A stretch of DNA of 64,000 nucleotides, taken from Oculina patagonica. Taxonomy: Eukaryota. The stretch covers positions 17,980,001 to 18,044,000 of the forward strand of contig NC_135769.1 in assembly GCF_052425735.1 (NCBI RefSeq). Reading direction: 5' to 3'. The notes under the pieces are model-generated. The model was not told the DNA's origin. It did not search any database and saw only the letters and a list, made by a program, of their open reading frames with translations. This document shows, in pieces, positions 3,530-58,394 of this stretch. Position 1 is the stretch's first letter. Each line of letters opens with the position of its first letter. Position numbers and translations under genes: made by a program.

Positions 3530-5152
3530 TTACCTAAATGGCATTTCGCAAGGTTGGTTCAAGGATTCGTTAAAACGCCCATGAACAATTATTAGAAGGA
3601 ATGTACTAGTCCATAACGATACTAACGCCGCGGTTACAATTGCCACTGAAATGTGTCTTTTCCATCTTCTTCGCCAAACAGCCATGACAGCCATATTCTG
3701 GTAGCGAGTCTCGATCGCTAGAGATACGCTGGTGAAAAACCACTCAATCACCAGCTGAACTGAAGTTGTGATGGCAAAAGCTTGTAGTAACTTTAAAAAT
3801 GAATCGTTTTGTAAGTAAATAAATTGATATAAGTACAAAAAGCCGTTAACAGACACTATAGCAGTTGACTCGAACAACATGCTCATGATAGCGATATCAG
3901 CCATAAGTCTCTCACGGCGAGGAGTACGAAAACTTCCCCAAGGAGCTGATGTTCTTTTCCAGATCAGATGACAAATGTGGTCAATGACAACCATGGTGCT
4001 TCTTTCTAAGACTTCTGTAGCGCCGTGAATTATTCCAAGAATAACGATCGATTGTAAACTATCAAGATCTGCCTGTAAAACTCGAAACATAACCGCTGCT
4101 GTGCAATACAATGGCGCTAACAAGACATACGAATATCCCGGATGGGTAATGTTCCATAACCGCTGAACACATATTCGCGAGATGACTTTGAGCACGACTC
4201 CAATGAGAGGAGCGAAGAGTGCGATTACCAGGCGCATTTTGCCTTCCTTGCTTTGTTTGTTATACGCTGGGTAAATTATTTCAGCCACAGGAATGGCAAG
4301 AACTGCAACGGCGAAGGCAGGAACTTTTATTTTGAAGAAAAACTTCACCTGCCGTCTCATCGACAGTCGCTTGCAAAAGTGTTTTGTTATAAGATACACT
4401 TGGCAACATGTACTAAAAACGCTATTAACGTTAAGTGGAATTTTTTGCAATGTAGTAAGTTTGGAATGAGATATTCCTAGGGCTTGAAGAATCACTCGAT
4501 AAAGTGCATCTAAAACATATCCAAGAGAAAAAACTAGCATCAGTTTTCTTTTCACCCCCATTAACTGATATGGACGGAAAAGAAATAGCATAACCACGAA
4601 CGTCGAAGTGTGTAAAAAAGCAACGCAGATCATATCAGAGATAGATCTCAACCATTGCACTTTTACTGGAATGAACTCCTTTGGGTGGAATTGGCAGTTG
4701 TTTATAGTCTTATAACATAGATAGGAGATCAGCATGTATACTGAACCTATGATGGTAGCGGTTAGTAGTGAAATCAATGCTCCAATGTTCATTGATTTAC
4801 AAACTGTACGGAGGGCGGATGGTCTGAGTCGCTTCCAAGCCATTGCTTTATCTTCATCTTGCTGATCTCCCTGTGTTTCTTCGTTTACTTCTGTTGAGAA
4901 GGCATTTATAACTTGTATACTAAGATTGTTAGCCACAGGATAGTCCAGGTTTGTGATTTCTCTGTAGCTGTATTCTTGATAAATAAGCTCATCGACAGGA
5001 AGATAATTCCATTCTCGACCTGTGCTTTGTAGAGGATCGTAGCCAAAAGACTCTGCCGTGAATTCAGGTTCTTCTGGGTTTAAATGCTCTGTCACGCCTC
5101 GTGTAAAACTGAACACAATATGACCAACGACTTCTATCAGTGTACTGCTCAT
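3530..5152 (-). CDS. Uncharacterised intronless ~11-TM membrane protein, copy B (540 aa, divergent TM2-TM5 subtype)
   Basis: Uninterrupted 540-aa ORF, highly similar to 5 other intact ORFs in the window, with many hydrophobic segments. Confidence 0.9.
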   Translation of the reverse strand: MSSTLIEVVGHIVFSFTRGVTEHLNPEEPEFTAESFGYDPLQSTGREWNYLPVDELIYQEYSYREITNLDYPVANNLSIQVINAFSTEVNEETQGDQQDEDKAMAWKRLRPSALRTVCKSMNIGALISLLTATIIGSVYMLISYLCYKTINNCQFHPKEFIPVKVQWLRSISDMICVAFLHTSTFVVMLFLFRPYQLMGVKRKLMLVFSLGYVLDALYRVILQALGISHSKLTTLQKIPLNVNSVFSTCCQVYLITKHFCKRLSMRRQVKFFFKIKVPAFAVAVLAIPVAEIIYPAYNKQSKEGKMRLVIALFAPLIGVVLKVISRICVQRLWNITHPGYSYVLLAPLYCTAAVMFRVLQADLDSLQSIVILGIIHGATEVLERSTMVVIDHICHLIWKRTSAPWGSFRTPRRERLMADIAIMSMLFESTAIVSVNGFLYLYQFIYLQNDSFLKLLQAFAITTSVQLVIEWFFTSVSLAIETRYQNMAVMAVWRRRWKRHISVAIVTAALVSLWTSTFLLIIVHGRFNESLNQPCEMPFR

Positions 5153-7150: not shown

Positions 7151-7994
7151 GGACGACCCCATACCTAATGAACTTGCTTATCGATATTAGTTCCTGTTTA
7201 TTTATTAAGTTTCGTTTTTTTAATTTCCCGCAAACTAGTTATTGATAATTATCTAATTAGGTGAAGGGAATACAATGGGACAATAGACTTACCCAGAGCA
7301 CAATAAATGATATGTAGTTAGTTTTTAACCCATAGTAAAGTATATTTTCCTGCAGATGTTGCGGTCGTAAATTTAACCGTGTGTTTATTCTCACAGCTAA
7401 GAACACACACATATACGAAATATAATATATAATAGAGAAAGAAGAAAAAGGAAGCCAAAAATCACATCAGTAAACTATTAGTAAACTATTAGAAGTAGGC
7501 CACTCAGTTAGCACATGATTGAAATCTGTGCAAGCGTATGTACGCGTACTGGAGTAATCTTTATTCATCCATAAACTACTATAAATTCAAAACAATATAA
7601 AAAAGCTATTACATAAACGATTTAGGCAGTCTTAAAGGATTGCAACGAAGGAGAGTTCTTTATTTTATTGGGTAATCCATTCCATAATGTAGCCCCACCA
7701 CACCCACCTTGCACTACTTACGCCGTAATGAGTGGATTTAGAACACGTAGTGTACATTTCAGTTCGATATTCAGGACACCTTTGTGAACGCTGTGCATTA
7801 TGTCGGTTACGTGCTTTTGTCGTCTAGTTTGGAGGTCCTCCCAATTTAGCACGCAACAAAGGGTCTGAGACCATACATTGTACGAAGTTCTGGTGATGAC
7901 CATGGCAGCCCTATTTTGTAATCTCAGTAGCCAGAGTAGCTTATCAGACAGCGTTTTTCCGACATTCTCCCACACTGGGCTGCAGTAGTCAAAA

Positions 7995-8924: not shown

Positions 8925-9229
8925 TGATTAAATTATCGTCACTAACGTAGGGTCACACCCTCTTAATCATTCCTATCCCGGAAGGCATTTTCTTACAGAT
9001 TTCTTCCATGTGATTTGACCAGCATTTAGCATTTGATACAATTTCCCAGTTGGGAACCACCAATCTGTACCATTGGCATCATGTTAGGATCTTAGTGACA
9101 TTGACCGTTTGTAATTATAATCAACATGTATTCACTTTTCATAGAAAATCTCTACAGTGCTTAGTCATCAGTATGTCATTTTTCGGGGCAGTTTACAAAG
9201 TGCAGTCCTTGAGATCCCTCGATGTAATG

Positions 9230-10849
9230 TTATGTAAACGGCATTTTACAAGGTTGATTTAAGGGCTCTTTAAATTGCTCGTGTACCATAACTAAAAGAT
9301 TTACGCTAGTCCATATGCCTACTGACACAACAGTTACAATTGCCACTACAATGTGTCTTTTCCATCGTCTTCGCCAAACAGCCATATTCTGATAGTGAGT
9401 CTCGATCGCAAGAGAGACGCTGGTGAAAAACCACTCAATCACAAGCTGAACTGAAGTTGTGATGGCGAAAGCAGACTGTAATAGCTTTAAAAGGGAATCG
9501 TTTTGTAAGTAAATAAATTGATATAAGTACAAAAAGCCGTTAACAGACACTATAGCAGTTGATTCCGACAACATGCTCAAGATAGCGATATAAGCCATTA
9601 GTCTCTCACGGCGAGGGGTACAAAAACCTCCCCAAGGAGCTGAAGTTCTTTTCCAAATCACGTGACAAATGTGATCAATAACAACCATGGTGCTTCGTTC
9701 TAAGACTTCTGTAGCGCCGTGAATTATTCCAAGAATAGCGATGGATTGCAAACTGTCAAGATCCGCCTGTAAAACTCGAAAAATGAAAGCTGAAGCACAA
9801 TACAGCGGTGCTAATAGGATATAGGAATATCCCGGATGAGTAATGTTCCATAACCGCTGGACACAAATTCGCGAGATGACTTTAAGCACGACTCCAATGA
9901 GAGGAGCGAAGATTGCAATTACCAGGCGCATTTTGCTTTCCTTACTTTGCTCGTTATACGCTGGGTAAATCCAAGCGGCCGCAGAAATGGCAAGAATTAT
10001 AACAAATAAGATAGGAATTGTCATTTCCAAGAACAAAGTCACCTTCAGTCTCCTTGTCCGTCCCATACGGAAGTGATTCGTTAGAAAATAGGCTTGCCAA
10101 CATATAGCCATTACAAATAAAGCGTTGAGGGGAATCTTTTGCAAACCAGAAAGCTTGGAATGAGATATTCCCAGGGCTTGTAGAGCGACACGATAACATG
10201 TGTCCAAGAAATATACAAGGCAAGCAGCCAGGACCAGTTTTCTTTTCATTCCCATTATCTGATAAGGACGAAATAGAAGTAAAGTACATGTGAAGAACCA
10301 AGTGTAAAGAAAAGCACAAGAGATCACATCAAAAATTGATCTCGTCCATTGCACGTTTTCTGGAATGGACTTCTTAGGGTGAAATTCACAGTTGGTTATA
10401 GTCTTAAAAGACAGGTTGGAGATCGTCATGAATATTGAACCTATGATGGTAGCAGTTAGTAGTGAAATCAAAGATCCAATGTACATTGATTTACAGACTG
10501 TACGGAGAGCGGATGGTCTGAGTCGCTTTCAAGCCATTGCTCTATCTTCATCTTGCTTGTCTTCCTGTGTTTCTTCGTTTTCCTCTGGCGAACACGCGTC
10601 TATAACCCTTATATCAAGACGGCTAGACGCTAAATAATCCCAGCTTGTGACTTCCCTGTGGCTGTATTCTTGATAAATAAGCTCATCAACAGGGAGATAA
10701 TTCCATTCTCGACCTGTGCTTTCCAATGGATTGTAGCCGAAAGACTCTGTCGTGTATTCAGGTTCTTCTGGGTTGTAGCGCTCTGCCACGCCTCGTGTAA
10801 AACTGAACACGATCGGACCAAACACCTCTAACAGTGTAATTCCACTCAT
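9230..10849 (-). pseudogene. Family copy C with an in-frame nonsense codon (Trp107 TGG->TGA)
   Basis: ORFs 10529-10849 and 9230-10486 are in the same frame and together cover the full protein. It also has a 3-aa deletion (MAV) and a 1-aa insertion. Confidence 0.85.
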
Positions 10850-12600
10850 TGAGACCTGAACAAACGCTTACAGGTAACCGTAATTTCGGTGGTCATCTGC
10901 TCCTTATATTCTATTTTCACGCGGAAGTTTGAGTTTAGTTCTTTCTGCTCACTTCGGAACGTTAAAACACTCATTTCCGCTCGTTTCTAACCGCCCCTAA
11001 CGGCTACATTTAAGCCCTGTAAAAATGTACCAAAATAGACCAAAATTTCTAAAATGGGCCAAAATAACTGTTTAAAATGGGCTTAACCAATATCAATAGT
11101 CATTTTAATCATTCTTCCCATTTAGTCGAAATTGTCAACAAATAAAAAAAGTTAAATTAACCTTGTGTAATATGTGGTTTTAACCATTGATATCAGTCGC
11201 GATAACTCAAACTATTTAGATAAGCTTAAAAATTAAACGACTTAACTCATTAGCTATTGCAAGCATTTCAGATAGTTCAGAAACAAATGCAGTTTCTTCA
11301 TAATTTGAAGGTGAATCGAGGGCTGCCCAAAGGGCCTTTGATTTCTGTTTGTAATCGAGTTAGATAAGCTACCTAACTTAGTTCAACCGACAACAAGGTT
11401 GTGCAACAAAACAAAAGAAAACGCCGGTAAAAATGTGATCATTTTGCGATGTATAGTAGCTCGATTGATGACGAAAATAAACAATCTTTATTTTTTCAAC
11501 TGATGACGATTACACGTTCCAAACTGAAATATTTATAATAATTGTTAATAGCTGATATAACTATTTGAGTAAGTTCATTCAACTAGCATTGTAAGTACCG
11601 TGAAGTAGTTAAAATGACAGTTTTAAAAGTCATTATAACTACGACAGACCATAACAAAAAAAATTCCCAAATATACAAGCCAACATGCTTTACAATCCTT
11701 TAACCTTTTGCCAATAACTAAGAAGTCGACTGATACAAGATAAGAAACTTGAGATCATGCCCTCCCTCCCAACTTATCACTCCGTTCTTTTTTTCCCGCC
11801 CAATCGCAGGTTACAAGATACTATCGATACTCACGCTGGCAACACTTCTGTTCGGAAATACTGTCACGTATGAAATATCTCGGTAACTGAAACATGAGGG
11901 TCAAGTGAATAAAAATTTACTTTTTTGATGCACCAAGATTGAAAAATACAACAGTTGTCCAAATAATTATTTTTTGACAACTGTTTTCTTTATAAAATTT
12001 CCTCTATCCATGTAAATTGCAATGTAAAATAGAACTGGTTTCTTACCTTTGTCAGTTTAGCAAACAAATAATAATACGGGAGAAAATAAGACCCGTCTTA
12101 TCTAAGATGCGAGTAAATAAGTCGCGAGCTGATCGTATAAAAAGTACAAAATAAGCGTTCGTGTCTTAGTTTAGGCGCAACTTATCTAAGAACAAGGGTT
12201 TCGGCTGTTCTTATTTTTTCCGCGTCTTGAAAAACTGGCGTGAACTTCCTCGTATAAGTGCTTTCGCGTCCTACATAAGACGTGCACTATCAGTGCGCAT
12301 GCGTAACACAACATCAATGTGCAAATGTTTCTATTTTAAAATGTTCCTAAAAAAGAGGTTATAATTACATTGTTCGTTCGTACGAAGAAAATCTACACTT
12401 TCGAGTGAAAAACATATCAAAAGGCGCTTGTACTGCAGAAAATGCCAAAAAAAACCACGAGGTTCAAATTCTTACCTCTTCCTGAGCTTCTGATCATTAA
12501 CGTGGAGTTTACAGTTCCGGGTTTCTGTCATTAAGGAAAACTAACCTGAAACAATTAAGGATTTGTTGGTAAGCATTTTTTAGTTCTTTAAGCAGCAAAG

Positions 12601-14083
12601 GTGAGCAGTACAATGATAGAAGTCTTTAGTCATATCGTGTTCAGTTTTACACGAGGCGTGACAGAGCACTACAACCCAGAAAAACCTGAATTCACGGTGG
12701 AGTCTTTTGGCTACGATCCTCTACAAAGCACAGGTCGAGAATGGAATAACCATTCTGTTGATAAGCTTTTTTATCAAGAATACAGTGACAGAGAAGTCAC
12801 AAACCTGGACTATTATGTGGCTAACAATCTCAGTATACAAGTTATAAATGCCTTCTCAACAGAAGAAAACGAAGAAACACAGGAAGCAAGATGGAGACAG
12901 AGCAATGGCTTGGAAGCAGCTCAGACCATCCGCTCTCCGTACAGTTTGTAAATCAATGTACATTGCAGCTTTGATTTCACTACTCACTGCTACCATCATA
13001 GGTTCAGTATACATGCTGATCTCCTATCTATGTTATAAGACTATAAACAACTGCCAATTCCACCCAAAGGAGTCCATTCCAGTAAAAGTGCAATGGTTGA
13101 GATCTATCTCTGATATGATCTGCGTTGCCGATTTTGTTACACACTTCGACGTTCGTGGTTGTGCTTTTTCTTTTCCGTCCATATCAGTTAATGGGGGTAA
13201 AAAGAAAACTGATCGGTGCTAGTTTAGATGCACTTTATCGAGTGATTCTACAAACCCTAGGAATATCTCATTCCAAACTTACTACATTGCAAAAAATTTC
13301 ACTTTACGTTAGTAGCGTTTTTAGTAGATGTTGCCAAGTGTAGCTTGTAACGAAACAGTTTTGCATACGACAGTCGATAAGACGGCAGGTGAAGTTTTTC
13401 TTCAAAATGACAGTATCTGCCTTTTCTTTTCAATTCCTGTGGCCGAAATAATCTACCCAGCGTACAACAAACATAGTAAGGAAGGCAAAATGCGCCTGGT
13501 AATCGCACTCTTCGCTCCTCTCATTGGAGTCGTACTCAAAGTAATCTCGCGAATTTGTGTCCAGCGGTTATGGAACATTACCCATCCGGGATATTCGTAT
13601 GTCTTATTAGCGCCGTTGTATTGCACAGCAGTGGTTTTTTCCGTGTTTTACAAGCGGATCTTAATAGTTTACAATCCATCGCTATTCTTGGAATGATTCA
13701 TGGTGTCACAGAAGTCATAGAAAGAAGTGCTATGGTTGTGATCGATCACATTTGTCACGTGATGTGGAAAAAACAACAGCTCCTTGGGGAAGTTTTCGTA
13801 CTTGTCGCCTTGAGAGACTAATGGCTGATATCACTATCATGAGTACGTTGTTTATATCAACTGCTGTAGTATCTGTTAATGGTTTTTTGTACTTGTGTCA
13901 ATTTATTTACTTACAAAACGATTTCTTTTCAAAGTTACTACAAGCTTTTGCCATCACAACTTCAGTTCAGCTGGTGATTGAGTGGTTTTTTCACCAGCGT
14001 ATCTCTTGCGATCGAGACTCGCTACCAGAATATGGCTGTCATGGCTGTTTGGCGAAGAAGATGGAGAAGACACATTTCAGTGG
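12601..14083 (+). pseudogene. Family copy D: frameshifted inverted paralogue of copy B, running into the assembly gap
   Basis: The start codon is GTG. Successive frameshifted ORFs (12601, 12848, 13125, 13328, 13555, 13752, 13978) tile the copy-B protein, and there is also an internal TAG. Confidence 0.9.
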
Positions 14084-14717: not shown

Positions 14718-16343
14718 TTAAGTAAACGGTATTTTACATGGTTGATACGAGGGCTCTTTAAAACGCTCGTGTAACATTAATACAAGGTTTCCGCTAGTCC
14801 ATACACCAACTGAAAAAACAGTTATAATTGCTACTAAAATGTGTCTTTTCCATCTTTTTCGCCAAACAGCCATGACAGGCATATTCTGATAGCGAGTCTC
14901 AATCGCTAGAGATACGCTGGTGAAAAACCACTCAATCACCAGCTGAACTGAAGTTGAGATTGCGAAAGACGGCACTAACTTTAAATGAGAACTGTTTTGT
15001 AAGTAAATAAATTGATACAAGAATAAAAATCCGTTAACAGACACTATGGCAGTTGATTCAGACAACATGCTCATAATAGCGATATCAGCCATAAGTCTCT
15101 CACGGCGAGGAGTACGAAAACTTCCCCAAGGAGCTAATGTCTTTTTACAAATGACATGACAGATGTGATCAATGACAACCATGGTGCTTCGTTCCATGAC
15201 CTCTGCAGCGCCGTGGATTATTCCAAGAATAGCGATGTATTCCAAACAGTCAAGATCCGCTTGTAAAACTCGAAACATAACTGCTGAAGCACAATGCAAC
15301 GGCGCTAGTAAGACAAATGAATATCCCGGATGAGTGATGTTCCATAACCGCTGGACACAAATTCGCGAGATTACTTTGAGTACGACTCCCATGAGAGGAG
15401 CGAAGAGTGCGATTACCAGGCGCATTTTCCCTTCCTCATTTTGTTCGTTGTACAGTGGGTAAATTATAGAGGCCACAGAAATTGCAAGAATTATAACAGA
15501 ACAGAGGGGAACTGTGATTTGCAAGAACAAAGTCAGTTGCTGTCTCCTTGTCCGTCCCATACGGAAGTGATTCGTTAGAAAATAGGCTTGCCAACATATA
15601 CCCATTACAAACAAAGCATTTAGGGGACTCTTTTGCAAAGCAGAAAGCTTGGAATAAGAAATTCCCAGGGCTTGTAGAGCGACACGATAACATGTGTCCA
15701 AGAAATATACAAGGCAAGCAGCTAGAACCAGTTTTCTTTTCACCCCCATTAACTGATAAGGGCGAAATAGAAGTAAGGTACATGTAAAGAACCAAGTGTA
15801 AAGAAAAGCACAAGAGATCACATCAGAAATTGATCTCATCCATTGCACGTTTTCTGGAATGGACTTCTTAGGGTAAAATTCACAGTTGTTTGCAGTTTTA
15901 AAAGTTAGGTAGGAGATCGACATGTATACTGAACCTATGATGGTAGAAGTAAGTAGCGAAATCAAAGCTCCGATGTACATTGACTTACAAACTGTACGGA
16001 GCGCGGATGGTCTGAGTCGTTTCCAAGCCATTGCTTTATCTTCATCTTTTTGATCTTCATGTGTTTCTTCGTTTTCCTCCGGCGAACACGCGTCTATAAC
16101 CCTTACATCAAGGCGGCTGGACACTAGATAGTCCCAGCTTGTGACTTCTTTGTCGCTATATTCTTGATAAATAAGCTCATCAACAGGACGATAAAACCAT
16201 TCTCGACCTGTGCTTTCTAGAGGATTGTAGCCAAAAGACTCTGCAGTGAATTCAGGTTCTTCTGGGTTGTAGTGCTCTGTCACGCCTCGTGTAAAGCTGA
16301 ACACGATATGACCAAACACCTCTATCAGTGTACTGCTACTCAT
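14718..16343 (-). CDS. Uncharacterised intronless ~11-TM membrane protein, copy E (541 aa)
   Basis: Intact ORF. The conserved ATG (MSSSTLIEVF) is at 16343; the track's longer start is a non-ATG extension. Confidence 0.9.
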   Translation of the reverse strand: MSSSTLIEVFGHIVFSFTRGVTEHYNPEEPEFTAESFGYNPLESTGREWFYRPVDELIYQEYSDKEVTSWDYLVSSRLDVRVIDACSPEENEETHEDQKDEDKAMAWKRLRPSALRTVCKSMYIGALISLLTSTIIGSVYMSISYLTFKTANNCEFYPKKSIPENVQWMRSISDVISCAFLYTWFFTCTLLLFRPYQLMGVKRKLVLAACLVYFLDTCYRVALQALGISYSKLSALQKSPLNALFVMGICWQAYFLTNHFRMGRTRRQQLTLFLQITVPLCSVIILAISVASIIYPLYNEQNEEGKMRLVIALFAPLMGVVLKVISRICVQRLWNITHPGYSFVLLAPLHCASAVMFRVLQADLDCLEYIAILGIIHGAAEVMERSTMVVIDHICHVICKKTLAPWGSFRTPRRERLMADIAIMSMLSESTAIVSVNGFLFLYQFIYLQNSSHLKLVPSFAISTSVQLVIEWFFTSVSLAIETRYQNMPVMAVWRKRWKRHILVAIITVFSVGVWTSGNLVLMLHERFKEPSYQPCKIPFT

Positions 16344-19869: not shown

Positions 19870-20235
19870 CTATCGATCAAGTTAGTAATAGCCGCCAAAG
19901 GCAGTCAAAGAAGAAAAGGTCTTATTTGATTGTTTAATCAGTTCCACAATTTAGCCACACCCTACCCCAACCCCCTTGCACTTCTTACGCCGTAATGAGT
20001 GGCTTCAGGACACAGTGAGCATTTCAGTTCGATATTCAGGACACCTTTGTGGACCTTGTACATCATGTTAGCTACGTGCTTTTGTCGTCTAGTTTGGAGG
20101 TCTTCCAAATTTAGTACCCAACAAAGGGACTGAGACCGTACATCGTACGAGGACCTTGTGATGACCATGGCAGCCCTATTGTGTAATCTCAGTAGCTTAT
20201 CAGACAACTTTTTTCCGACATTATCCCCCACTGGG
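19870..20235 (-). mobile_element. LINE RT C-terminal fragment (co-duplicated with the gene)
   Basis: ORF 19962-20231 reads DNVGKKLSDKLLRLHNRAAMVIT...RRQKH..MYKV; it is the same element as at 7.6-8.0 kb. Confidence 0.7.
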
Positions 20236-21028: not shown

Positions 21029-22654
21029 TTAAGTAAATGGCATTTTACAAGGTTGATTTAAGGGCTCTTTAAAGTGCTCGTGTACCATTACTAAAAGGTT
21101 CTCGCTAGTCCATGTACCTACTGACACGGCAGTTACAATTGCCACTAAAATGTGTCTTTTCCATCTTCTTCGCCAAACAGCCATGACAGCCATATTCTGA
21201 TAGCGAGTCTCGATCGCTAGAGAAACACTGGTGAAAAACCACTCAATCACCAGCTGAACTGAAGTTGTGATGGCGAAAGACTGTAATAGCTTTAAAAGCG
21301 AATCGTTTTGTAAGTAAATAAATTGATACAAGTACAAAAATCCGTTAACGGACACTATAGCAGTTGATTCCGACAACATGCTCATGATAGCGATATCAGC
21401 CATTAGTCTCTCACGGCGAGGAGTACGAAAACTTCCCCAAGGAGCTGATGTTTTTTTGCAAATCACATGACAAATGTGATCAATAACAACCATGGTGCTT
21501 CGTTCTATGACTTCTGCAGCGCCGTGAACTATTCCAAGAATAGCGATGGATTGTAAACTGTCAAGATCCGCTTGTAAAACTCGAAACATAACCGCTGATG
21601 CACAATACAACGGCGCTAATAAGACATACGAATATCCCGGATGTGTGGTATTCCATAACCGTTGGACACAAATTCGCGAGATTACTTTTAGCACGACTCC
21701 AATGAGAGGAGCGAAGAGTGCTATTACCAGGCGCATTTTGCTCTTCTTGCTTTTCTCGTTATACGCCGGGTAAATTATAGAAGCCGCAGAAATGGCAAGA
21801 ACTATAACAGATAAGATAGGAACTGTCATTTGCAAGAACAAAGTCGCCTTTTGTCTCCTTGTGCATCCCATACGAAAGTGTTTCGTTAGAAGATAGGCTT
21901 GCCAAAATATACTCATAAAAGCGAAAGCATTGAGTGGGATCTTTTGCAAACCAGAAAGCTTGGAATGAGATATTCTCAGAGCTTGTAGAGCGACACGATA
22001 ACATGTGTCCAAGAAATATGCGAGGCAACTAACCAGGACCAGTTTTCTTTTCACTCCCATTAATTGATAAGGGCGAAATAGGAAAAAGGTGCATGTAAAG
22101 AACCAAGTGTAAAGAAAAGCGCAAGAGATCACAGCAGAAATTAATCTCGTCCACTGCACTTTTACTGGAATGGACTTCTTTGGGTAAAATTCACAGTTGT
22201 TTATAGTTTTAAAACACAGATAGATGATCAGCATGTATACTGAACCTATGATGGTAGCAGTTAGTAGTGAAATCAAAGCTCCAATGTACATTGATTTACA
22301 AACTGTACGGAGAGTGGATGGTCTGAGCCGCTTCCAAGCCATTGCTTTATCTTCATCTTGTTGATCGTCTTGTGTTTCTTCGTTTTCCTCTGGTGAACAC
22401 GCGTTTATAACCCTTATATCGAGACTGCTAGACGCTAGATAGTCCAAGCTTGTGACTTCTTTGTCGCTGTATTCTTGATAAATAAGCTCATCAACAGGAT
22501 GATAATACCATTCTCGACCTGTGCTTTGTAGTGGATCGTAACCTAAAGACTCCGCCGTGAATTCGGGTTCTTCTGGGTTGAAGTGCTCTGTCACACCTCG
22601 TGTAAAACTAAACACGATATGACCAAACACCTCTAGTAGTGTACTGCTACTCAT
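21029..22654 (-). CDS. Uncharacterised intronless ~11-TM membrane protein, copy F (541 aa)
   Basis: Intact ORF, colinear with its paralogues. Confidence 0.92.
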   Translation of the reverse strand: MSSSTLLEVFGHIVFSFTRGVTEHFNPEEPEFTAESLGYDPLQSTGREWYYHPVDELIYQEYSDKEVTSLDYLASSSLDIRVINACSPEENEETQDDQQDEDKAMAWKRLRPSTLRTVCKSMYIGALISLLTATIIGSVYMLIIYLCFKTINNCEFYPKKSIPVKVQWTRLISAVISCAFLYTWFFTCTFFLFRPYQLMGVKRKLVLVSCLAYFLDTCYRVALQALRISHSKLSGLQKIPLNAFAFMSIFWQAYLLTKHFRMGCTRRQKATLFLQMTVPILSVIVLAISAASIIYPAYNEKSKKSKMRLVIALFAPLIGVVLKVISRICVQRLWNTTHPGYSYVLLAPLYCASAVMFRVLQADLDSLQSIAILGIVHGAAEVIERSTMVVIDHICHVICKKTSAPWGSFRTPRRERLMADIAIMSMLSESTAIVSVNGFLYLYQFIYLQNDSLLKLLQSFAITTSVQLVIEWFFTSVSLAIETRYQNMAVMAVWRRRWKRHILVAIVTAVSVGTWTSENLLVMVHEHFKEPLNQPCKMPFT

Positions 22655-25518: not shown

Positions 25519-26289
25519 ATGACACTTCCGGTTGAAACTGTAATTTACCCACTGTATAACGAGCAAAGTAAGGAAGGGGAAATGCGCCTGGTAATTGCAC
25601 TCTTCGCTCCTCTCATTGGAGTCGTGCTAATAGTAATTTCGCGAATTTGTGTTCAGCGGTTATGGAACATTACTCATCCGGGATATTCCTATATCCTATT
25701 AGCACCACTGTATTGTGCTTCAGCTTTCATATTTCGAGTTTTACAAGCGGATCTTGACAGTTTGCAATCCATCGCTATTCTTGGAATAATTCACGGCGCT
25801 ACAGAAGTCATAGAACGAAGCACTATGGTTGTGATCGATCACATTTGTCATGTGATTTGGAAAAGAACATCAGCTCCTTGGGGAAGTTTTCGTACTCCTC
25901 GTCGTGAGAGACTAATGGCTGATATCGCCGTCTTGAGCATGTTGTCGGAATCAACTGCTATAGTGTCTGTTAACGGCTTTTTGTACCTTTTTCAATTTAT
26001 TTACTTACAAAACGATCCCCTTTTAAAGCTATTACAGTCTTTCGCCATCAAAACTTCAGTTCAGCTGGTGATTGAGTTGTTTTTCACCAGCGTGTCTCTT
26101 GCGATCGAGACTCACTATCAGAATATGGCTGTCATGGCTGTTTGGCGAAGAAGGTGGAAAAGACACATTGTAGTGTCAATTGTAACTGTTGTGTCAGTAG
26201 GCATATGGACTAGCGGAAATCTTTTAGTTATGGTACAAGAGCAATTTAAGGAGCCCTTAAATCAATCTTGTAAAATGCCGTTTACATAA
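25519..26289 (+). pseudogene. Family copy G: 5'-deleted copy encoding only the C-terminal half (256-aa open ORF)
   Basis: Family homology starts at ~25542 (IYPLYNEQ). The first codons (MTLPVET) derive from upstream flank sequence seen at 22812-22834 (minus strand) and 58224. Confidence 0.75.
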
Positions 26290-26591
26290 CATTACATCGA
26301 GAGATCTCAAGGACTGCGCTTTGTAAACTGCCCCGAAAAATGACATACTGATGACTAAGCGCTATGGAGATTTTCTATGAAAAGAGAATACATGTTGATT
26401 ATAATTACAAACGGTCAATGTCACAAAGATCCTAACATGATGCCAATAGTACAGATTGGTGGTTCCCAACTGGCAAATGTATCTAATGCTAAAGCTGGTC
26501 AAATCACATGGAAAAAATCAGTAAGAAAATGCCTTCCGGGATACGTTAGTGACGATAATTTAATCACAGTATATAAGTCTTTGGTGCAATA

Positions 26592-27149: not shown

Positions 27150-27495
27150 ATGAAACGCTGTCTGATAAGCCACTGAGATTACAAAATAGGGCTGCCAGGG
27201 TCATCACCAGATCCTCCGCGTACGATGTACGGTCTCAGTCCCTTCGTCGGGCACTTGATTGGGACGACCTGCAAATTAGACGACAAAGGCACGTAACCAA
27301 AATAATGTACAAGGTCCACCATAGATTTGTCCTGAATATCGAACTGAAATGCTCACTTCGTGTTCTGAATCCACTCATTATGGCGTAAGAAGTGCAAGGT
27401 GGGTGTGGTGTGGCTAAATTATGGAATGGATTACCCAATAAAATAAAGAACTCTCCTTCCTTGCAATCCTTTAAGACTGTCTTAAGCAGCTATTT
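27150..27495 (+). mobile_element. LINE RT C-terminal fragment (inverted duplicate of 7.6-8.0 kb)
   Basis: Translates as TLSDKPLRLQNRAARVITRS...LDWDDLQIRRQRH..MYKV. Confidence 0.7.
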
Positions 27496-33636: not shown

Positions 33637-35262
33637 TTAACTAAACGGCATTTTACAAGTTTGATTTAAGGGCTCTTTAAAGCGCTCGTGAACCAATATT
33701 AAAAGGTTTTCGCTACTCCATAAACCTAATGTCAGGGCAGTAGAAATTACGACTGAAATGTGTCTTTTCCATCGCCTTTGCCAAACAGCCATGACAGCCA
33801 TATTCTGATAGCGAGTCTCGATCGCTTGAGATACGCTTGTGAAAAACCACTCAATCACCAACTGAACTAAAGCTGTGATGGCAAATGACTGCAGCAAATT
33901 TAAAAGGGACTCATTTTGTAAGAAAATAAATTGATACAAGTACAAAAATCCATTTACGGCCACTATAGCAGTTGATTCAGACAACATGCTCATGATAGCG
34001 ATATCAGCCATTAGTCTCTCACGGCGAGGAGTACGAAAACTTCCCCAAGGAGCTGATGTTCTTTTCCAAATCACGTGACAAATGTGATCGATTACAACCA
34101 TGGTGCTTCGTTCTATGACTTCTGTAGCGCCGTGAATTATTCCTAGAATAGCGATGGATTGCAAACTGTCGAGATCTGCTTGTAAAACTCGAAAAATAAC
34201 TGCTGAGGCACAATACAACGGCGCCAATAAGGCAAAGGAATATCCTGGATGTGTAATATTCCATAACCGCTGAACAAAAATTCGCGAGATAACTTTTAGT
34301 ACGACTCCAATGAGAGGAGCGAAGAGTGCAATTACCAGGCGCATTTTCCCTTCCTTACTTTGCTCGTTATACGCTGGGTAAATTATAGAGGCCGCAGAAA
34401 TGGCAAGAATTATAATAGAGCAGAAGGGAACTGTCATTTGCAAGAACAAAGTTACCTTCTGTCTCCTTGTCCGTCCCATAAGGAAGTGATTCGTTAGAAG
34501 ATAGGCTTGCCAAAATATGTTTATTAAAGATAAAGCATTAAGAGGAATCTCTTGCAAAGAAGAGATCTTTGAATGAGATATTCCCAGGGCTTGCAGAGCA
34601 ACACGATAACATGTGTCTAAGAAATATACAAGGCAAACAACCAGGAACAATTTCTCTTTCACTCCTATTAACTGATAAGGGCGAAATAAGAACAAGATAT
34701 ATGTAAAGAAAGACGTGCGAAAAAAACCGTCAGAGATCACACTAGAAACTGTTCTCGTCCACTGCACTTTCACTGGAATGGACTTTTTTGGGTAAAATTC
34801 ACAATTGCTTTTAGTTTTTAAACATAGATAGGTGATCAGCATGTAAACTGAACCTATGATGGTAGCAGATAGTAGTGAAATCAAAGCTCCAATGTACATT
34901 GATTTACAAACTGTACGGAAAGCGGAAGGTCTGAGTCGCTTCCAAGCCATTGCTCTATCTTCATCTTGCTGATCTTCCTGTGTTTCTTCGTCTTTTTCTG
35001 GCGAACACGCGTCTATAACCCTTACATTAAGACGGCTGGACACAAGAGAGTCCCAGCTTGTGACTTCTCTATCGCTGTATTCTTGATAAATAAGCTCGTC
35101 AACAGGATGATAATACCATTCTCGACCCGTGCTTTGAAAGTGATCGTAGCCAAAAGACTCTGCAGTGAATTCAGGTTCTTCTGGGTTGCAGTGCTCTGTC
35201 ACGCCTCGTGTAAAACTAAACGCGATATGACCAAACACCTCTAACAGTGTGCTGCTACTCAT
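33637..35262 (-). CDS. Uncharacterised intronless ~11-TM membrane protein, copy H (541 aa)
   Basis: Intact ORF. Confidence 0.92.
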   Translation of the reverse strand: MSSSTLLEVFGHIAFSFTRGVTEHCNPEEPEFTAESFGYDHFQSTGREWYYHPVDELIYQEYSDREVTSWDSLVSSRLNVRVIDACSPEKDEETQEDQQDEDRAMAWKRLRPSAFRTVCKSMYIGALISLLSATIIGSVYMLITYLCLKTKSNCEFYPKKSIPVKVQWTRTVSSVISDGFFRTSFFTYILFLFRPYQLIGVKEKLFLVVCLVYFLDTCYRVALQALGISHSKISSLQEIPLNALSLINIFWQAYLLTNHFLMGRTRRQKVTLFLQMTVPFCSIIILAISAASIIYPAYNEQSKEGKMRLVIALFAPLIGVVLKVISRIFVQRLWNITHPGYSFALLAPLYCASAVIFRVLQADLDSLQSIAILGIIHGATEVIERSTMVVIDHICHVIWKRTSAPWGSFRTPRRERLMADIAIMSMLSESTAIVAVNGFLYLYQFIFLQNESLLNLLQSFAITALVQLVIEWFFTSVSQAIETRYQNMAVMAVWQRRWKRHISVVISTALTLGLWSSENLLILVHERFKEPLNQTCKMPFS

Positions 35263-37199: not shown

Positions 37200-37455
37200 C
37201 TCGTCAATCCTCTAGGCACGTGCATTCATGGATCGAAACTCGGTTCACGCTTCTAGATCTGTCCATAATGCCTCCGTTGTATAAACAAGAACATGATAAC
37301 ATGATGGTAATACCATTCTCGACCTGTGCTTTGTAGAGGATCGTAACCAAAAGACTCTGACGCTCTGTCGTGAATTCAGGCTCTTCTGGGTTGTACTGCT
37401 CCGTCAGGCCTCGTGTTAAATTGAACACGATACGACCAAACACAGCAACTCATTG
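37200..37455 (-). pseudogene. Short N-terminal relic of the family, separated from its upstream region by a transposon
   Basis: Reads FGRIVFNLTRGLTEQYNPEEPEFTTE, then an 8-nt insertion frameshift and loss of homology. Confidence 0.75.
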
Positions 37456-41413: not shown

Positions 41414-43039
41414 TTAAGTAAACGGCATTTTACAAGGTTGATTTAAGGGCTCTTTAAAGTGCTCGTGTACGATCGCCAAAAGGTTTCCGCTTGTCCATAT
41501 ACCTAATGACACAACAGTTACAATTGCCACTAACATGTGTCTTTTCCATCGTCTTCGCCAAACAGCCATGACAGCCATATTCTGATAGTGAGTCTCGATC
41601 GCTAGAGACACGCTGGTGAAAAACGACTCAATCACCAGCTGAACTGAAGTATGAATGGCGAAAGATTGTAACAACTTTAAAAGGGAATCGTTTTGTAAGT
41701 AAACAAATTGATACAAGTACAGAAAACCGTTAACAGATACTATAGCAGTTGATTCCGACAACATGCTCATGATAGCGATATCAGCCATTAGTCTCTCACG
41801 GCGAGGAGTACGAAAACTTCCCCAAGGAGCTGATTTTCTTTTCCAAATCACGTGACAAATGCGATCGATCACAACCATGATGCTTCGTTCTATGACTTCT
41901 GCAGCGCCGTGAATTATTCCAAGAATAGCGATGGTTTGCAAACTGTCAAGGTCTGCTTGTAAAACTCGAAACATAACCGCTGAGGCACAATACAACGGCG
42001 CTAGTAAAACATACGAATATCGCGGATGAGTAATGTTCCATAACCGCTGGACACAAACTCGCGAGATTACTTTGAGTACGACTCCAATAAGAGGAGCGAA
42101 AATTGCGATTACCAGGCGCATTTTGCTCTCCTTGCTTTGCTTGTTATACAGTGGGTAAATTATAGCGGCCGCAGAAATGGCAAGAATTATTACAGAACAG
42201 ATAGGAACTGTGATTTGCAAGAACAAAGTCACCTTTTGTCTCCTTGTCCGTCCCATACGGAATTGACTCGTTACAAGATAGGCTTGCCAACATAAACAAA
42301 TTACAAGTAAAGCGTTGAGTGGAATCTTTTTAAAAACAGAAAGCTTGGAACGAGATATTCCCAGGGCTTGCAGAGCAACACGATAACACGTGTCCAAGAA
42401 ATATGTGAGGCACGAAACCAGTACCAGTTTTCTCTTCACCCCCTTTAACTGATAAGGGCGAAATAAGAATAAGGTACAGTAAAAGTACCAAGCGTAAAGG
42501 AAAGCGCAAGAGATCACATCGGAAATTGATCTCGTCCATTGCACGTTTTCTGGAATGGACCTCTTTGGGTGAAATTCACAGTTACTGATAGTTTTAAAAG
42601 ATAGGTAGGAGATCGACATGAATACTGAACCTATGATGGTAGCAGTTAGTAGTGAAATCAAAGCTCCGATGTACATTGATTTACAAACTGTACGGAGAGC
42701 GGATGGTCTGAACCGCTTCCAAGCCATTGCTCTATCTTCATCTTGCTGATAGTCCTCTATTTCTTCATTTTCCTCTGGTGAACACGCGTTTATAACCCTT
42801 ACATTAAGACTGCTAGACGCTAGATAGTCCCAGCTTGTGACTTCTCTGTCCCGGTATTCTTGATAAATAAGCTCATCAACAGGAAGATAATTCCATTCTC
42901 TACCTGTGCTTTGTAGAGGATCGAAGCCAAAAGACTCTGTCGTGAATTCAGGTTCTTCTGGGTTGTAGTGCTCTGTTACGCCTCGTGTAAAACTAAACAC
43001 GATATGACCAAACACCTCTATCAGTGTACTGCTACTCAT
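41414..43039 (-). CDS. Uncharacterised intronless ~11-TM membrane protein, copy I (541 aa)
   Basis: Intact ORF with the conserved ATG at 43039. Confidence 0.92.
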   Translation of the reverse strand: MSSSTLIEVFGHIVFSFTRGVTEHYNPEEPEFTTESFGFDPLQSTGREWNYLPVDELIYQEYRDREVTSWDYLASSSLNVRVINACSPEENEEIEDYQQDEDRAMAWKRFRPSALRTVCKSMYIGALISLLTATIIGSVFMSISYLSFKTISNCEFHPKRSIPENVQWTRSISDVISCAFLYAWYFYCTLFLFRPYQLKGVKRKLVLVSCLTYFLDTCYRVALQALGISRSKLSVFKKIPLNALLVICLCWQAYLVTSQFRMGRTRRQKVTLFLQITVPICSVIILAISAAAIIYPLYNKQSKESKMRLVIAIFAPLIGVVLKVISRVCVQRLWNITHPRYSYVLLAPLYCASAVMFRVLQADLDSLQTIAILGIIHGAAEVIERSIMVVIDRICHVIWKRKSAPWGSFRTPRRERLMADIAIMSMLSESTAIVSVNGFLYLYQFVYLQNDSLLKLLQSFAIHTSVQLVIESFFTSVSLAIETHYQNMAVMAVWRRRWKRHMLVAIVTVVSLGIWTSGNLLAIVHEHFKEPLNQPCKMPFT

Positions 43040-44509
43040 TGTTAATCGCCCCCGGTGGAACAAATGGTTAAAACACAGCAGTTTAGTAAGTTAATGACGG
43101 ACTTGAGGACGCAACTAAGTGACGATCTGCAGATGACAAACTGACTTTTTCTGTGCTGTTTGCCAGATTTCCGCACAACTTCCGTTTGATATGTGGGTTT
43201 TTACCCCTATATGGGGTTTAACCCTTCTTTTGTCAGTCAGGCGTCTGTTGACGTTACATGCTATTTGGGAAACAATTGTAGCTTATCCTATTCAGACTCC
43301 AGAGGTGATCTTTGTTGTTATTCATCGCAACACTTTTCTCATCAGTATGTTGTTTGTTTTGTCGTTTTTCTTAAACAAATCAAACGCGAACGACAGCCGG
43401 TTTCATCGCATTTTGAAACACTAAAAGAGACTTGGGAATTTTTGACGAAAAGGGGGGTGTTTGAAAAGGTGAGGGAACAGGGTTTGATTTTCGTGATTTC
43501 TCAACTGGAACGGAAAAATAAAATCATAATAGTCTATGCTAATTTAGACCCAATCAACTGTCATGGTAATGATTTCCTTTGTTTTAAACAATTGAGACCG
43601 AGAAAACTTTCTAGTAACTTCTTTCGTTGTATGACTGTTGACGAGTTCTAAATCTTCTTGCTTAGGAAGATGGAAAACGAAATAGTTCTGTTTCGTTTTT
43701 AAGTAAATACGATCAAGATCGCAGTTTTCTGTGCTTCTTGCTTTTGGTCATATCTTGTGTAAAATGAAGAGCAGGGAATATATGAGTAGACCCCTCTATC
43801 AATGTTCTCCAACTTCAGGGGGTGGGGATGGGAGACGGCAACCTCGTTCCCAGGGCTTTTCCCGATGTGCGCCGCCAAAGGGTATGATTTTTGACCCATT
43901 TTGGTCTAGAATAGGGTATCTATTTTGATCATTTTGGTCTTAAATAGGATATGGTTTGTGCATTCTGGTCAGCAATCAGTGGTGAGGTAAAATTCTTCGA
44001 AGAAACTATTTTCAATCTTGTTTTTACTCATCTTTTGAGTAGTGCGATTTTATTAACGTCGTGAATTTAAAGTCTTTCTCAAATGTTCACGCAAACCGAA
44101 GCATTTTTTGAGTTAGGTCTGGTCCGAAAAAGGGTGTTGAGTCTTGGATCAGGTCTGATATAGGCGACAGGGAAATTTGACTTTGGCCTGAAATAGGGCA
44201 AGGGTTTCAGGAAGTGCACCGCACACCCCACTCCTCCCCCCCCCCCCTCCACCCGCAACTGCTACTCGTTTGACGTGATCTATAAACTGACAAAAATGGT
44301 CGAGGGTGTCAATAGTACTTTGGGCCGAGAAATGGCATTTTATACCTCCTTCAGGACCCTCTCGGTAGGCCACTCAGTCAAGAGAACTGTAGTAATAATC
44401 TTTATTTAACCACGGTAATACAAATTCAGCAAAGGTTGCTTTTCTTTTCAAAGTATAGCTGTGACCCTAAAAAAGCTTTAAATACAAAATAACATTTAAA
44501 AAACTATTG

Positions 44510-44870
44510 ATCAAGTTAGTAATAGCCGCCAAAGGCAGTCAAAGAAAGAGAGTTCTTTATTTGATAGTTTAACCAATTCCATAATTTAACCACACCCTAC
44601 CCCAACCCCTTGAACTTCTTACGCCATAATGAGGGGCTTCAGGACACAGTGAGCATTTCAGTTCGATATTCAGGACACCTTTGTGGACCTTTTACATTAT
44701 GTTAGCTACGTGCTTTTGTCGTCTAGTTTGGAGGTCCTCCCAATTTAGTACCGGACAAAGGGTCTGAGACCGTACATCGTACGAGGATTTGGTGATGACC
44801 CTGGCAGCCCTATTTTGTAATCTCAGCAGCTTATCAGACAACTTTTTCTGACATTATCCCACACTGGGTA
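44510..44870 (-). mobile_element. LINE RT C-terminal fragment (duplicate of 19.9-20.2 kb)
   Basis: Direct match to 19870-20235. Confidence 0.7.
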
Positions 44871-44880
44871 GGTATGGAAG

Positions 44881-45163
44881 GTAAAGTCTGCTTTCGAGCC
44901 TAGTGGCCAATCAGACCGGAGCTCATCCCAGTTTCAGTAACATGAAGCGACTAGGAGTATTTCTACTTCCTTCTGGGTGGATGCTAGTCCATCGCAGAGT
45001 TACCCCTTAGCATTAACGACACCGGTAATTAGTCATATATCTGCGTGGAGAGAGGCTCGTGAATTATCTTGCCCAAGAACCCAACAAAATGGCCCCCTCC
45101 AGTGCTAGAACCCGGACAGCTCGATCCGGAGACCAGCCCACTAACCTTTAGGCCACCGCGCCT
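44881..45163 (-). mobile_element. tRNA-derived SINE (duplicate of 20611-20886)
   Basis: Same sequence and same insertion point. Confidence 0.7.
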
Positions 45164-52545: not shown

Positions 52546-53274
52546 ATGAGTAAGCAAAGTCTTGGGGGAAAAGATCAGCTACGAAACCAAGGCCTGGCGG
52601 ACGCAGAAAATAAAATCAAAGAAGCGTGCGAGTTCTTTCAACAAGAAGCAGCAAGACTTCGGCAGGAGCAGGAAGCCTTCGACCCCATGTCGAAGAAACT
52701 GGATCATGTTCACTTTTCCTCGACCGTAAATCTCAATGTTGGTGGCTATCACTCCACAACAAGCGTTCAAACGCTGACCAAAGATCCAAACTCGATGCTG
52801 GCGGCCATGTTTACCGGACGATTTGAGATGAAACCTTCTGAAGATGGCTCGTTCTTTATCGATCGAGATGGAACTCACTTCCGGTTTATACTCAATTTTC
52901 TCCGCACTGGAAAGTTAACTTTGCCAGAAGGAGCAACATTTCTCAAGGAACTTGAAGAAGAAGCTAAGTTTTATCAGATCCAAGGAATCATTGACGAGTT
53001 GAGGCCTGCTGAACCGAGTACAATTCAAGCAAGTAAACCTATCGAGGCATTTGAAGTGTCGGTGATCCTGACAATGATGAGCATCGAAGTGTGTTGAAAT
53101 GTTGGCTTCCACGTGAGGACGGCAAATGGCGTCTTCTGTTCCGAGCTACTCGTGATGGCTTTGCAGCTGCAACCTTTCACTCCATATGTGATAACAAAGG
53201 ACCCACGGTCACCATTGTGAAAAGTGGAAACAATATTTTTGGAGGCTTCACAGAGGTGTCGTGGACGAGCCCGG
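52546..53274 (+). pseudogene. BTB/POZ (KCTD/T1-type) plus TLDc-domain protein, first exon, frameshifted
   Basis: VNLNVGG..TTSVQTLTKDPNSMLAAMF..FFIDRDGTHFRFILNFLRTG is a KCTD BTB motif. After a 1-nt loss at ~53073, WRLLFRATRDGF....FH..CDNKGPTVTIVK.....FGGFT..SW is the start of a TLDc domain. A splice donor GTAAGT follows at 53275. Confidence 0.8.
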
Positions 53275-58125: not shown

Positions 58126-58394
58126 TTTGCTCTTTAATGTGGCCCTTTTACGTAAGTTCTTACTCGCTCATATTCGCAGAAACTGAAACCACTTAAATAT
58201 TTTCATTCCCAATAGATAAGATAATGACACCTCCGATCGAAACTGAAAACGGGGAAGCCCCTCATGTGAAGTGGATTTTATACATCAAAACGACACAGGA
58301 ATATTCAGTTTATAATCTGAAGATTGCGTTCAAGTTACAGTTGTTTCCTTGCGTACCGTCAGTAACTTTTAAACCATTGCGTCTTCGATTAACA

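Follow-up and report, generated by a model that had tools for sequence, protein, structure and literature searches.

The 541-residue open reading frame on the minus strand of the Oculina patagonica window (the whole 64-kb stretch of DNA that was analysed) is a real gene maintained by selection; taken jointly with this, an 11-helix membrane topology with a cytosolic N-terminus and an external C-terminus is very probable. The frame (P0001, positions 21029-22654) comprises 541 codons plus a stop in one exon, unbroken and without introns, and is a copy of a tandem family. The explanation that best accounts for the results overall, namely a selected 11-helix protein that would act as a polar conduit and whose architecture resembles that of TMEM16, OSCA and TMC proteins, is one that we rate just short of evenly balanced.

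Intact copies within the window showed a dN/dS of 0.29 at a dS of 0.36, so that a chance origin of the frame is not credible. The window holds 11 family copies or fragments and two short 5' pieces, and in most copies the sequence likeness stops at the ORF boundaries or within about 30 bp of them. At least 82 single-exon family loci were scored among 202 candidates in O. patagonica; they were mostly full-length and free of stops, about 20% carrying stops, and the family loci are grouped, mostly in tandem, at 17.1-19.1 Mb of contig C12. The family size in this coral is put, roughly, at 100 to 200 single-exon paralogues. Large tandem arrays, a single coding exon and pseudogenes together correspond to the pattern of chemoreceptor-type arrays. 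In one DNA run, conserved words of the ORF were covered as deeply as about 3,400x, vs 23-32x over the flanks. Two other sequencing runs, which are probably low-coverage DNA, gave short contigs on multi-copy words only, one of them also over a flank, and a poly-A run from another species yielded no matching reads.

More than 1,200 close homologues of the protein were found, reduced to 667 cluster representatives at 50% identity, and all named matches are 'uncharacterized' or 'hypothetical'. The family occurs across stony corals and sea anemones, with named members in Oculina, Montipora, Orbicella, Desmophyllum, Actinia and Nematostella. In a literature search no paper was found that mentions the RefSeq locus names of its members, and the 11-helix family is not named in the available portions of papers on tandem duplication and dark genes in corals.

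The placement of the N-terminus inside and the C-terminus outside is supported by an 11-helix model of high confidence, the distribution of basic residues and the positions of sequons in distant relatives, and it agrees with the orientation proposed in the sequence-only reading. That reading counted about 11 hydrophobic segments; hydropathy gave nine clear and two weaker ones, and 11 long helices are present in both AlphaFold models, the model of residues 100-541 having a pLDDT of 93.1 and a pTM of 0.92. Between the two models the pLDDT of the loop containing C154 and of the C-terminal tail rose from below 50 to 81-90 after the alignment was deepened. Conservation was studied in 104 sequences, 25 close relatives and 79 distant ones with 22-36% identity. 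The close relatives carry on average 26.3 K+R on the six predicted inside segments vs 9.1 on the six predicted outside segments, and the distant relatives 25.3 vs 9.3. The proposal that basic clusters fall on alternate loops was thus borne out by the overall count (26 vs 9), although in this subfamily loops 1-2 and 5-6 are richer in basic residues than it implied. All the motifs quoted in that reading are present, but FRMGCTRRQ and ICKK..FRTPRRER depart at one or two residues from the cited sister copies.

In the distant relatives N-x-S/T sequons occur on the predicted outside segments, that is loop 1-2 (31 of 79), loop 5-6 (18 of 79), loop 9-10 (15 of 79, and 18 of the 25 close sequences) and the C-terminal tail (63 of 79), and they are rare on the inside loops (1, 8, 0, 6 and 2 of 79). 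In the full-length sequences of distant subfamilies the tail sequon surrounds the position of C536 as N-C-[ST]. The sequon N450-D-S (21299-21307) is indeed present in the short, predicted external loop 9-10, where it had been placed as QNDS, but it is conserved in the close subfamily only, and a second sequon, N335-T-T, which lies on a predicted cytosolic loop, had been overlooked.

All features described below are on the minus strand. Residues 1-104 (22343-22654) form an acidic, mostly disordered N-terminus, predicted to be cytosolic, with 24 D/E vs 5 K/R and a pI of 4.05, as compared with a pI of 9.9 for the body (residues 105-541); the acidic character noticed earlier was therefore correct. 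Within this interval the model shows a short helix at residues 4-23, and the motif D-x-I-[YF]-x-E-[YF] is conserved, E61 being invariant in a set of 19 sequences. The basic stretch ahead of helix 1, MAWKRLRPSTLRTVCKS (residues 105-121, 22292-22342), is predicted to be cytosolic and includes W107, found in every sequence that covers this position. Hydropathy and the model place helix 1, running from inside to outside, at residues 122-147 (22214-22291), followed by the external loop 1-2 (residues 148-166, 22157-22213) with the invariant C154 (codon 22193-22195). Helices 2-5 (residues 167-296, 21767-22156) constitute the faster-evolving half; D216 and R220, both conserved, belong to helix 3. Conservation and dN/dS define helices 6-10 (residues 308-481, 21212-21733) as the conserved core, which carries K323, R327, H338-P339-G340, R358, Q361, H377, E384, R385, D392, D420, E429 and E471. 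Two predicted cytosolic loops contain invariant residues: loop 8-9 (..FRTPRRER; residues 393-416, 21407-21478) has R413 and R416, and loop 10-11, TRYQNMAVMAVWRRRWKRH (residues 482-501, 21152-21211), has N487 and W494. According to the model, helix 11 (residues 502-524, 21083-21151), of variable sequence as judged by entropy, takes the C-terminus outside, where the tail ..NQPCKMPFT (residues 525-541, 21032-21082) contains C536 (codon 21047-21049).

The two halves of the protein evolve differently, with a dN/dS of 0.41 in helices 1-5 vs 0.21 in helices 6-11 (residues 301-527), both below 1; the value in the variable half indicates relaxed constraint, not positive selection. Per-segment entropy peaks in helices 2, 4 and 5. 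Helices 2, 4, 5 and 11 differ among paralogues, and helices 6-10 and the cytosolic loops are strongly conserved, loop 10-11 being the least variable segment (0.21 bits) and loop 8-9 among the least variable (0.35 bits).

Twelve residues are invariant in the 104 sequences: C154, R327, H338, P339, R358, Q361, D392, R413, R416, D420, N487 and W494. D216, R220, K323, H377, E384, R385 and E429 show at least 90% conservation, and position 471 is E or D in all sequences. The view that polar residues are conserved inside the membrane consequently held as regards their conservation in distant homologues, but many of the invariant ones lie at cytosolic helix ends and in cytosolic loops instead of mid-membrane. 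Such residues may mark an ion or solute pathway or a catalytic site. The position of many of them at the cytosolic face fits a gate and a binding or catalytic site equally well.

The two cysteines singled out by the sequence-only reading lie on the same external side in the predicted topology, C154 being present in 104 of 104 sequences and C536 in 102 of 104. Whether they form a disulfide appears to us evenly balanced; if so, they would staple the C-terminal tail onto loop 1-2. In a coevolution analysis (mutual information with APC, 288 sequences, Neff 72) the top pair between this loop and the tail ranked 567 of 94,830, in a signal dominated by subfamily structure, and is uninformative about contact between them. 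The prediction of a complex of two copies of residues 100-541 scored 0.00, which counts neither for nor against a homodimer. An internal 5+5 inverted repeat was sought by aligning the N-terminal and C-terminal halves with hhalign and, as this gave a probability of 0.7%, no repeat is detectable at the sequence level.

Searches for a characterised relative were negative by sequence: with 32 close and 19 diverse members as queries, Pfam gave nothing credible at E values up to 10 and no Anoctamin, RSN1_7TM or TMC match, and a profile search of PDB sequences gave no match at E up to 10. By structure, Foldseek found no match in the PDB below E 0.02, a viral fold library held no relative, and the ESM Atlas shape search reached a TM of at most 0.29 (PMT_2 0.28, Acyl_transf_3 0.29). 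In three VIA-align searches with two models, the only solved membrane proteins that aligned over the whole body were TMEM16A/F, OSCA1.1/TMEM63A and TMC-1/2 (Z 6.8-9.0, 215-256 residues, rmsd 5.4-7.1 Å), the best rows being TMEM16F (Z 9.0 over 237 residues), OSCA1.1 (Z 7.2 over 251), TMEM63A (Z 7.2-8.0) and TMC-2 (Z 7.0 over 255); a Z of 7-9 for an all-helical model is under the confidence range of the tool and may reflect a shared helix arrangement alone. Other polytopic proteins with long alignments had Z of 5.8 or less.

These alignments weakly suggest that the closest architecture to the model would be the 10-helix core of the TMEM16/OSCA-TMEM63/TMC superfamily plus one C-terminal helix. 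Most members of these families are homodimers; helices 3-7 line a polar groove or pore, and TMEM16 proteins have Ca2+-binding acidic residues on helices 6-8. The coral protein shares with them an all-helical polytopic body, with conserved charged residues inside helices, and with TMEM16 and TMC a cytosolic N-terminus. It departs from them in lacking any sequence or profile likeness and, unlike OSCA, whose extra helix is N-terminal, its additional helix is C-terminal. The superfamily has a conserved 10-helix architectural core (PMC11534332), and proteins of its families measure 700-1,000 aa and include large cytosolic or extracellular soluble domains (PMC5868767, Table 1), whereas the coral protein has 541 aa, a membrane body of about 440 aa, short loops and no large soluble domain. 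True evolutionary kinship with TMEM16, OSCA and TMC seems to us rather unlikely.

Proteins with the same predicted fold were found among the AlphaFold DB clusters with Foldseek (E 8e-8 to 1e-2, TM 0.50-0.66, probability 1.00, about 400-480 residues, 10-15% identity). All are uncharacterised, among others E1ZNQ6, A0A0G4EJ83, V9EDK3, K3WDT4, A0A812NTG1 and A0A4P9ZL49, which we take to be algal, chromerid, oomycete, dinoflagellate and fungal. They probably correspond to the Pfam 38.1 family PF28488 'SPCC553_12c', a domain carried by 13-14% of the members of the two nearest cnidarian Atlas clusters; the fission-yeast namesake is listed merely as 'transmembrane transporter (predicted)' (PMC5990653). 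Automatic UniProt naming makes some Pocillopora relatives rhodopsin-like GPCRs. We rejected this assignment, given 11 helices oriented N-in/C-out and not seven oriented N-out/C-in, no 7tm Pfam match and GPCR fold rows of about 95 residues, and the names 'GPCR family 1' and 'TMEM145' given to relatives look wrong. GPCR, MBOAT, GT-C, MFS and LeuT-type folds were all dropped, as none gave a whole-body structural match.

In the function that we tentatively favour, while holding it to be somewhat less than an even case, the protein body would serve as a polar conduit across the bilayer, be it an ion channel, a lipid scramblase or a small-solute transporter. Acidic and basic residues are conserved on helices 3, 6, 7, 8, 9 and 10, and on this view they would line the path or act as its gate. 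For scramblases, a membrane-spanning groove lined with charged residues has been given as one criterion (PMC11534332).

A different reading, to which we assign a low probability, is that the family constitutes a repertoire of chemo- or mechanosensors, gated by a stimulus or ligand and diversified by birth-and-death evolution, in which specificity would reside in the variable helices 2, 4, 5 and 11 together with loop 1-2, and the common output would be provided by helices 6-10 and their cytosolic loops. The large tandem arrays of intron-free genes with their share of broken copies, the confinement of most variation to one half of the protein next to nearly invariant cytosolic loops, and the N-in/C-out topology would all fit such a repertoire. 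By analogy only, vertebrate odorant receptors and insect OR/GR proteins also combine intron-free exons, tandem arrays with pseudogenes, and variable and conserved halves, and the insect OR/GR orientation is N-in/C-out, as predicted for the coral protein. According to one study (PMC10236652), transmembrane receptors make up most of the gene families that are amplified in corals. However, the variable half is under relaxed constraint and not positive selection, its helices could merely face lipid, and neither Foldseek nor VIA-align matched the fold to any receptor class; the protein differs from animal chemoreceptors in having 11 helices vs seven and in sharing no fold or sequence likeness with them.

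We also consider it improbable that the protein is an integral membrane enzyme, such as a transferase or hydrolase that modifies lipids or glycans, with an active site made of H338, D392, R413, R416, D420 and N487 at the cytosolic membrane face. This reading draws on the gathering of invariant residues in cytosolic loops 6-7, 8-9 and 10-11, which are the least variable parts of the protein, and where helices 6, 8 and 9 end on the cytosolic side, and on the precedent of several polytopic transferase families with 11-13 helices and an invariant His and Asp. Nevertheless, the fold matched neither MBOAT, GT-C and PMT proteins nor other membrane enzymes, for which there were weak partial rows only (ArnT, Z 6.6 over 94 residues, besides the PMT_2 and Acyl_transf_3 rows cited above), and hundreds of paralogues per genome would be unusual for a housekeeping enzyme.

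That the frame is non-functional or selfish, either spread by a mobile element or part of a decaying array without cellular role, is extremely improbable: the many copies, dispersed fragments, several copies with stops, inter-copy likeness that ends near the ORF boundaries and lack of transcript support from the sequencing runs searched would accord with it, but it is largely refuted by purifying selection and by the retention of the same residues both in subfamilies that share 22-36% identity and across corals and anemones. Moreover, the copies have no consistent linkage to a transposase, reverse transcriptase or viral gene, and no viral fold relative was found.

Numerous 'dark' gene families exist in coral genomes, and a good many of these are associated with membranes (PMC13044578). 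The 11-helix family is one of the large ones, with about 100-200 copies per genome; it occurs in reef corals and anemones, is under selection and has no characterised relative, and a confident three-dimensional model and a computationally tested topology are now available for it. As a more speculative proposal, which we regard as distinctly unlikely in its full form, corals and sea anemones might possess a repertoire, specific to their lineage, of compact 11-helix channels of TMEM16/OSCA/TMC type, hundreds in number, serving as environmental or symbiosis sensors, chemically or mechanically gated, which would represent a new class of receptor-channels with odorant-receptor-like birth and death. 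The family may go back to an intron-free gene that non-animal eukaryotes with the same fold either share or passed on to this lineage. If the architecture is not TMEM16/OSCA/TMC-like, the family would represent a fold without a solved representative, present too in poorly characterised non-cnidarian proteins. If the protein is instead a channel or scramblase of that architecture, it would constitute a compact new branch of the superfamily and provide a candidate sensor or transport repertoire for coral biology; and since Nematostella has members, the family is open to genetics.

The ORF at window positions 21029-22654 (minus strand) is uninterrupted over its 541 residues and represents a real gene, encoding an intact protein of 11 helices with a cytosolic N-terminus and an external C-terminus, in which conserved cysteines lie outside and a conserved charged core is accompanied by a variable periphery. 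The sequence-only observation is confirmed, and every motif it quoted was found in the sequence. Its acidic N-terminus corresponds to residues 1-104, with 24 acidic vs. 5 basic residues (pI 4.05); the rest of the protein has a pI of 9.9. Of the approximately 11 hydrophobic segments it had proposed, hydropathy revealed nine clear and two weaker ones, and modeling gave 11 long helices. A first AlphaFold model, with 32 close homologues as input, was mediocre (pLDDT 62.5) and left residues 1-122 disordered; a second model of residues 100-541, using 104 sequences that included subfamilies of 22-36% identity, was confident (pLDDT 93.1, pTM 0.92). Within the disordered acidic N-terminus two elements (window about 22466-22645) are kept across subfamilies: residues 4-23, a partly hydrophobic helix with a mean Kyte-Doolittle value of ~1.0, and residues 53-63, D-x-I-[YF]-x-E-[YF], whose E61 was invariant in a 19-sequence set and which is possibly a sorting or docking signal.

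The topology was assessed by counting K+R per loop over the alignment, assuming 11 spans and taking as inside the segment preceding helix 1 and loops 2-3, 4-5, 6-7, 8-9 and 10-11. The mean was 26.3 inside vs. 9.1 outside for the 25 close relatives, and 25.3 vs. 9.3 for the 79 distant ones. Independently, N-x-S/T sequons of the distant relatives were found on predicted outside segments (loop 1-2 in 31 of 79, loop 5-6 in 18, loop 9-10 in 15 and the C-tail in 63), as opposed to 1, 8, 0, 6 and 2 of 79 on the five predicted inside loops. Together, this charge bias and the sequon distribution led us to support the N-in/C-out arrangement originally proposed. The QNDS sequon, which the sequence-only reading placed outside, is present, but is subfamily-specific. 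An oddity is a second sequon in loop 6-7, on the predicted cytosolic side (N335-T-T in this ORF, window 21650-21652 region; N-I-T in most close copies), shared by 19 of the 25 close relatives and none of the 79 distant ones; it either goes unused or cautions against taking the topology of this loop for granted.

Given the N-in/C-out topology, C154 (loop 1-2) and C536 (C-tail) are both predicted to be external, as had been suggested. C154 is invariant (104/104 sequences), and C536 is present in 102/104. In the distant full-length members inspected (e.g. P0190, P0209, P0220 and P0237 in alignment A2) the tail cysteine is itself part of a glycosylation sequon, within the motif N-C-[ST]-x-P-F, where the close coral subfamily has Q-P-C-K-M-P-F. 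The deeper alignment raised the pLDDT of the C154 loop and the C-tail from <50 to 81-90, which fits a defined packing of these segments.

Conservation of polar residues in the helices was also borne out. R327, H338, P339, R358, Q361, D392, R413, R416, D420, N487 and W494 are invariant; D216, R220, K323, G340, H377, E384, R385, T387 and E429 are conserved at ≥90%, and position 471 is E or D in every sequence. Many of the conserved polar residues belong to cytosolic loops or to the ends of helices 6, 8 and 9 that face the cytosol. Variability is lowest in loops 8-9 (entropy 0.35 bits) and 10-11 (0.21 bits), and highest in helices 2, 4, 5 and 11.

Searches for known relatives yielded no credible Pfam match (E up to 10; 32 close and 19 diverse members), no match among PDB sequences (E up to 10, including the 104-sequence profile) and no significant Foldseek match against the PDB or a viral library. 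Against AlphaFold DB clusters, coral relatives ranked first, followed by uncharacterised entries at 10-15% identity (E 8e-8 to 1e-2, TM 0.50-0.66, probability 1.00), whose accession numbers suggest green algal, chromerid, oomycete, dinoflagellate and early-branching fungal origins. In the two nearest cnidarian ESM Atlas clusters, 13-14% of members carried PF28488 (SPCC553_12c; Pfam 38.1), whose fission-yeast namesake is described only as a 'predicted transmembrane transporter' (PMC5990653). Of the matches from exhaustive structural alignment to 48,161 PDB representatives, most were partial and involved soluble helical bundles; in the searches with both models, the only whole-body alignments to membrane proteins were to TMEM63A (Z 8.0 and 7.2), TMEM16F (7.5), TMEM16A (7.3), TMC-2 (7.0) and TMC-1 (6.8). 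When the top 1,000 PDB chains from Foldseek were re-aligned, TMEM16F was first (Z 9.0, 237 residues, rmsd 5.5 Å), OSCA1.1 reached Z 7.0-7.2 over 251-253 residues, and other polytopic proteins with long alignments scored ≤5.8. TMEM16, OSCA/TMEM63 and TMC make up a superfamily of channels and scramblases that share a conserved core of 10 helices (PMC11534332). However, Z values of 6.8-9.0 are under the tool's proof level for helical proteins, and those families are much larger (PMC5868767) and contain Pfam domains that the coral protein lacks; therefore, we regard this resemblance between models and structures as a weak, though repeated, lead and do not claim membership.

The proposed function is that of a TMEM16/OSCA/TMC-style polar conduit, built from helices 1-10 and passing ions, lipids or a small solute; a groove lined by charged residues is a criterion for scramblases in the literature (PMC11534332). 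Helix 11 would carry the C-tail to the external side, with C536 perhaps linked to C154, and the near-invariant cytosolic loops 8-9 and 10-11, with the HPG loop, could constitute a gate or a partner-binding face. As rival functions, the family could be a sensor or receptor repertoire, or a membrane enzyme with its active site at the cytosolic face, where many conserved polar residues are placed. Like these, the conduit is inferential.

The window (C12:17,980,001-18,044,000, within a 529-Mb assembly), assigned to the stony coral Oculina patagonica by RefSeq names of proteins that match its own identically or nearly so, sits inside a ~2-Mb super-cluster of the family on this contig. Besides the ORF under study it harbors five other intact copies (3530-5152, 14718-16343, 33637-35262, 41414-43039 and 45304-46929, all minus strand), making six; five broken or partial copies (1-504, 9203-10851, 12604-14083 adjoining an N gap, 25538-26316 and 58175-60012), whose defects are stops, one truncation and the gap; and two short 5' fragments (37281-37443 and 48702-48872), with both strands represented. 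In most copies the similarity stops at the ORF boundaries or within ~30 bp of them. A dispersed repeat of 330-500 bp (7643-7979, 19906-20235, 27153-27463 on the minus strand and 44379-44882), possibly a transposon remnant, adjoins several family copies; its 89-aa ORF (19962-20231, minus strand) had no Pfam match. The array also contains a 183-aa BTB_2 ORF (potassium-channel tetramerisation/KCTD-type; 52546-53097, plus strand; Pfam E 8e-22).

Genome-wide, at least 82 loci were scored among 202 candidates, concentrated at 17.1-19.1 Mb of the same contig; they are mostly full-length without stops, and about one fifth carry one or more. In a DNA run under the same species label, depth was 23-32x on the flanks vs. 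up to ~3,400x on conserved ORF words, consistent with a copy number of about a hundred or higher. The six intact window copies gave dN 0.106, dS 0.360 and dN/dS 0.29 (0.41 for helices 1-5, 0.21 for helices 6-11). A selfish or decaying ORF is thus largely excluded: the family is functional and evolves by tandem birth and death.

The close family has >1,200 database members, and an exhaustive profile search gave 667 cluster representatives at 50% identity; the named members are from Oculina, Montipora, Orbicella, Desmophyllum, Actinia and Nematostella, all of them stony corals or sea anemones. All named matches of the close family are 'uncharacterized' or 'hypothetical', and the literature searched contained no description of it. 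Coral relatives in AlphaFold DB (A0A3M6V0C4, A0A3M6UMW2 and A0A2B4RPR5) have been labelled automatically as 'G-protein coupled receptors family 1 profile domain-containing protein' or 'Transmembrane protein 145', for which neither Pfam nor the fold gives support. This 11-helix family might therefore be among those counted as expanded and 'GPCR-like' in some published surveys of corals.
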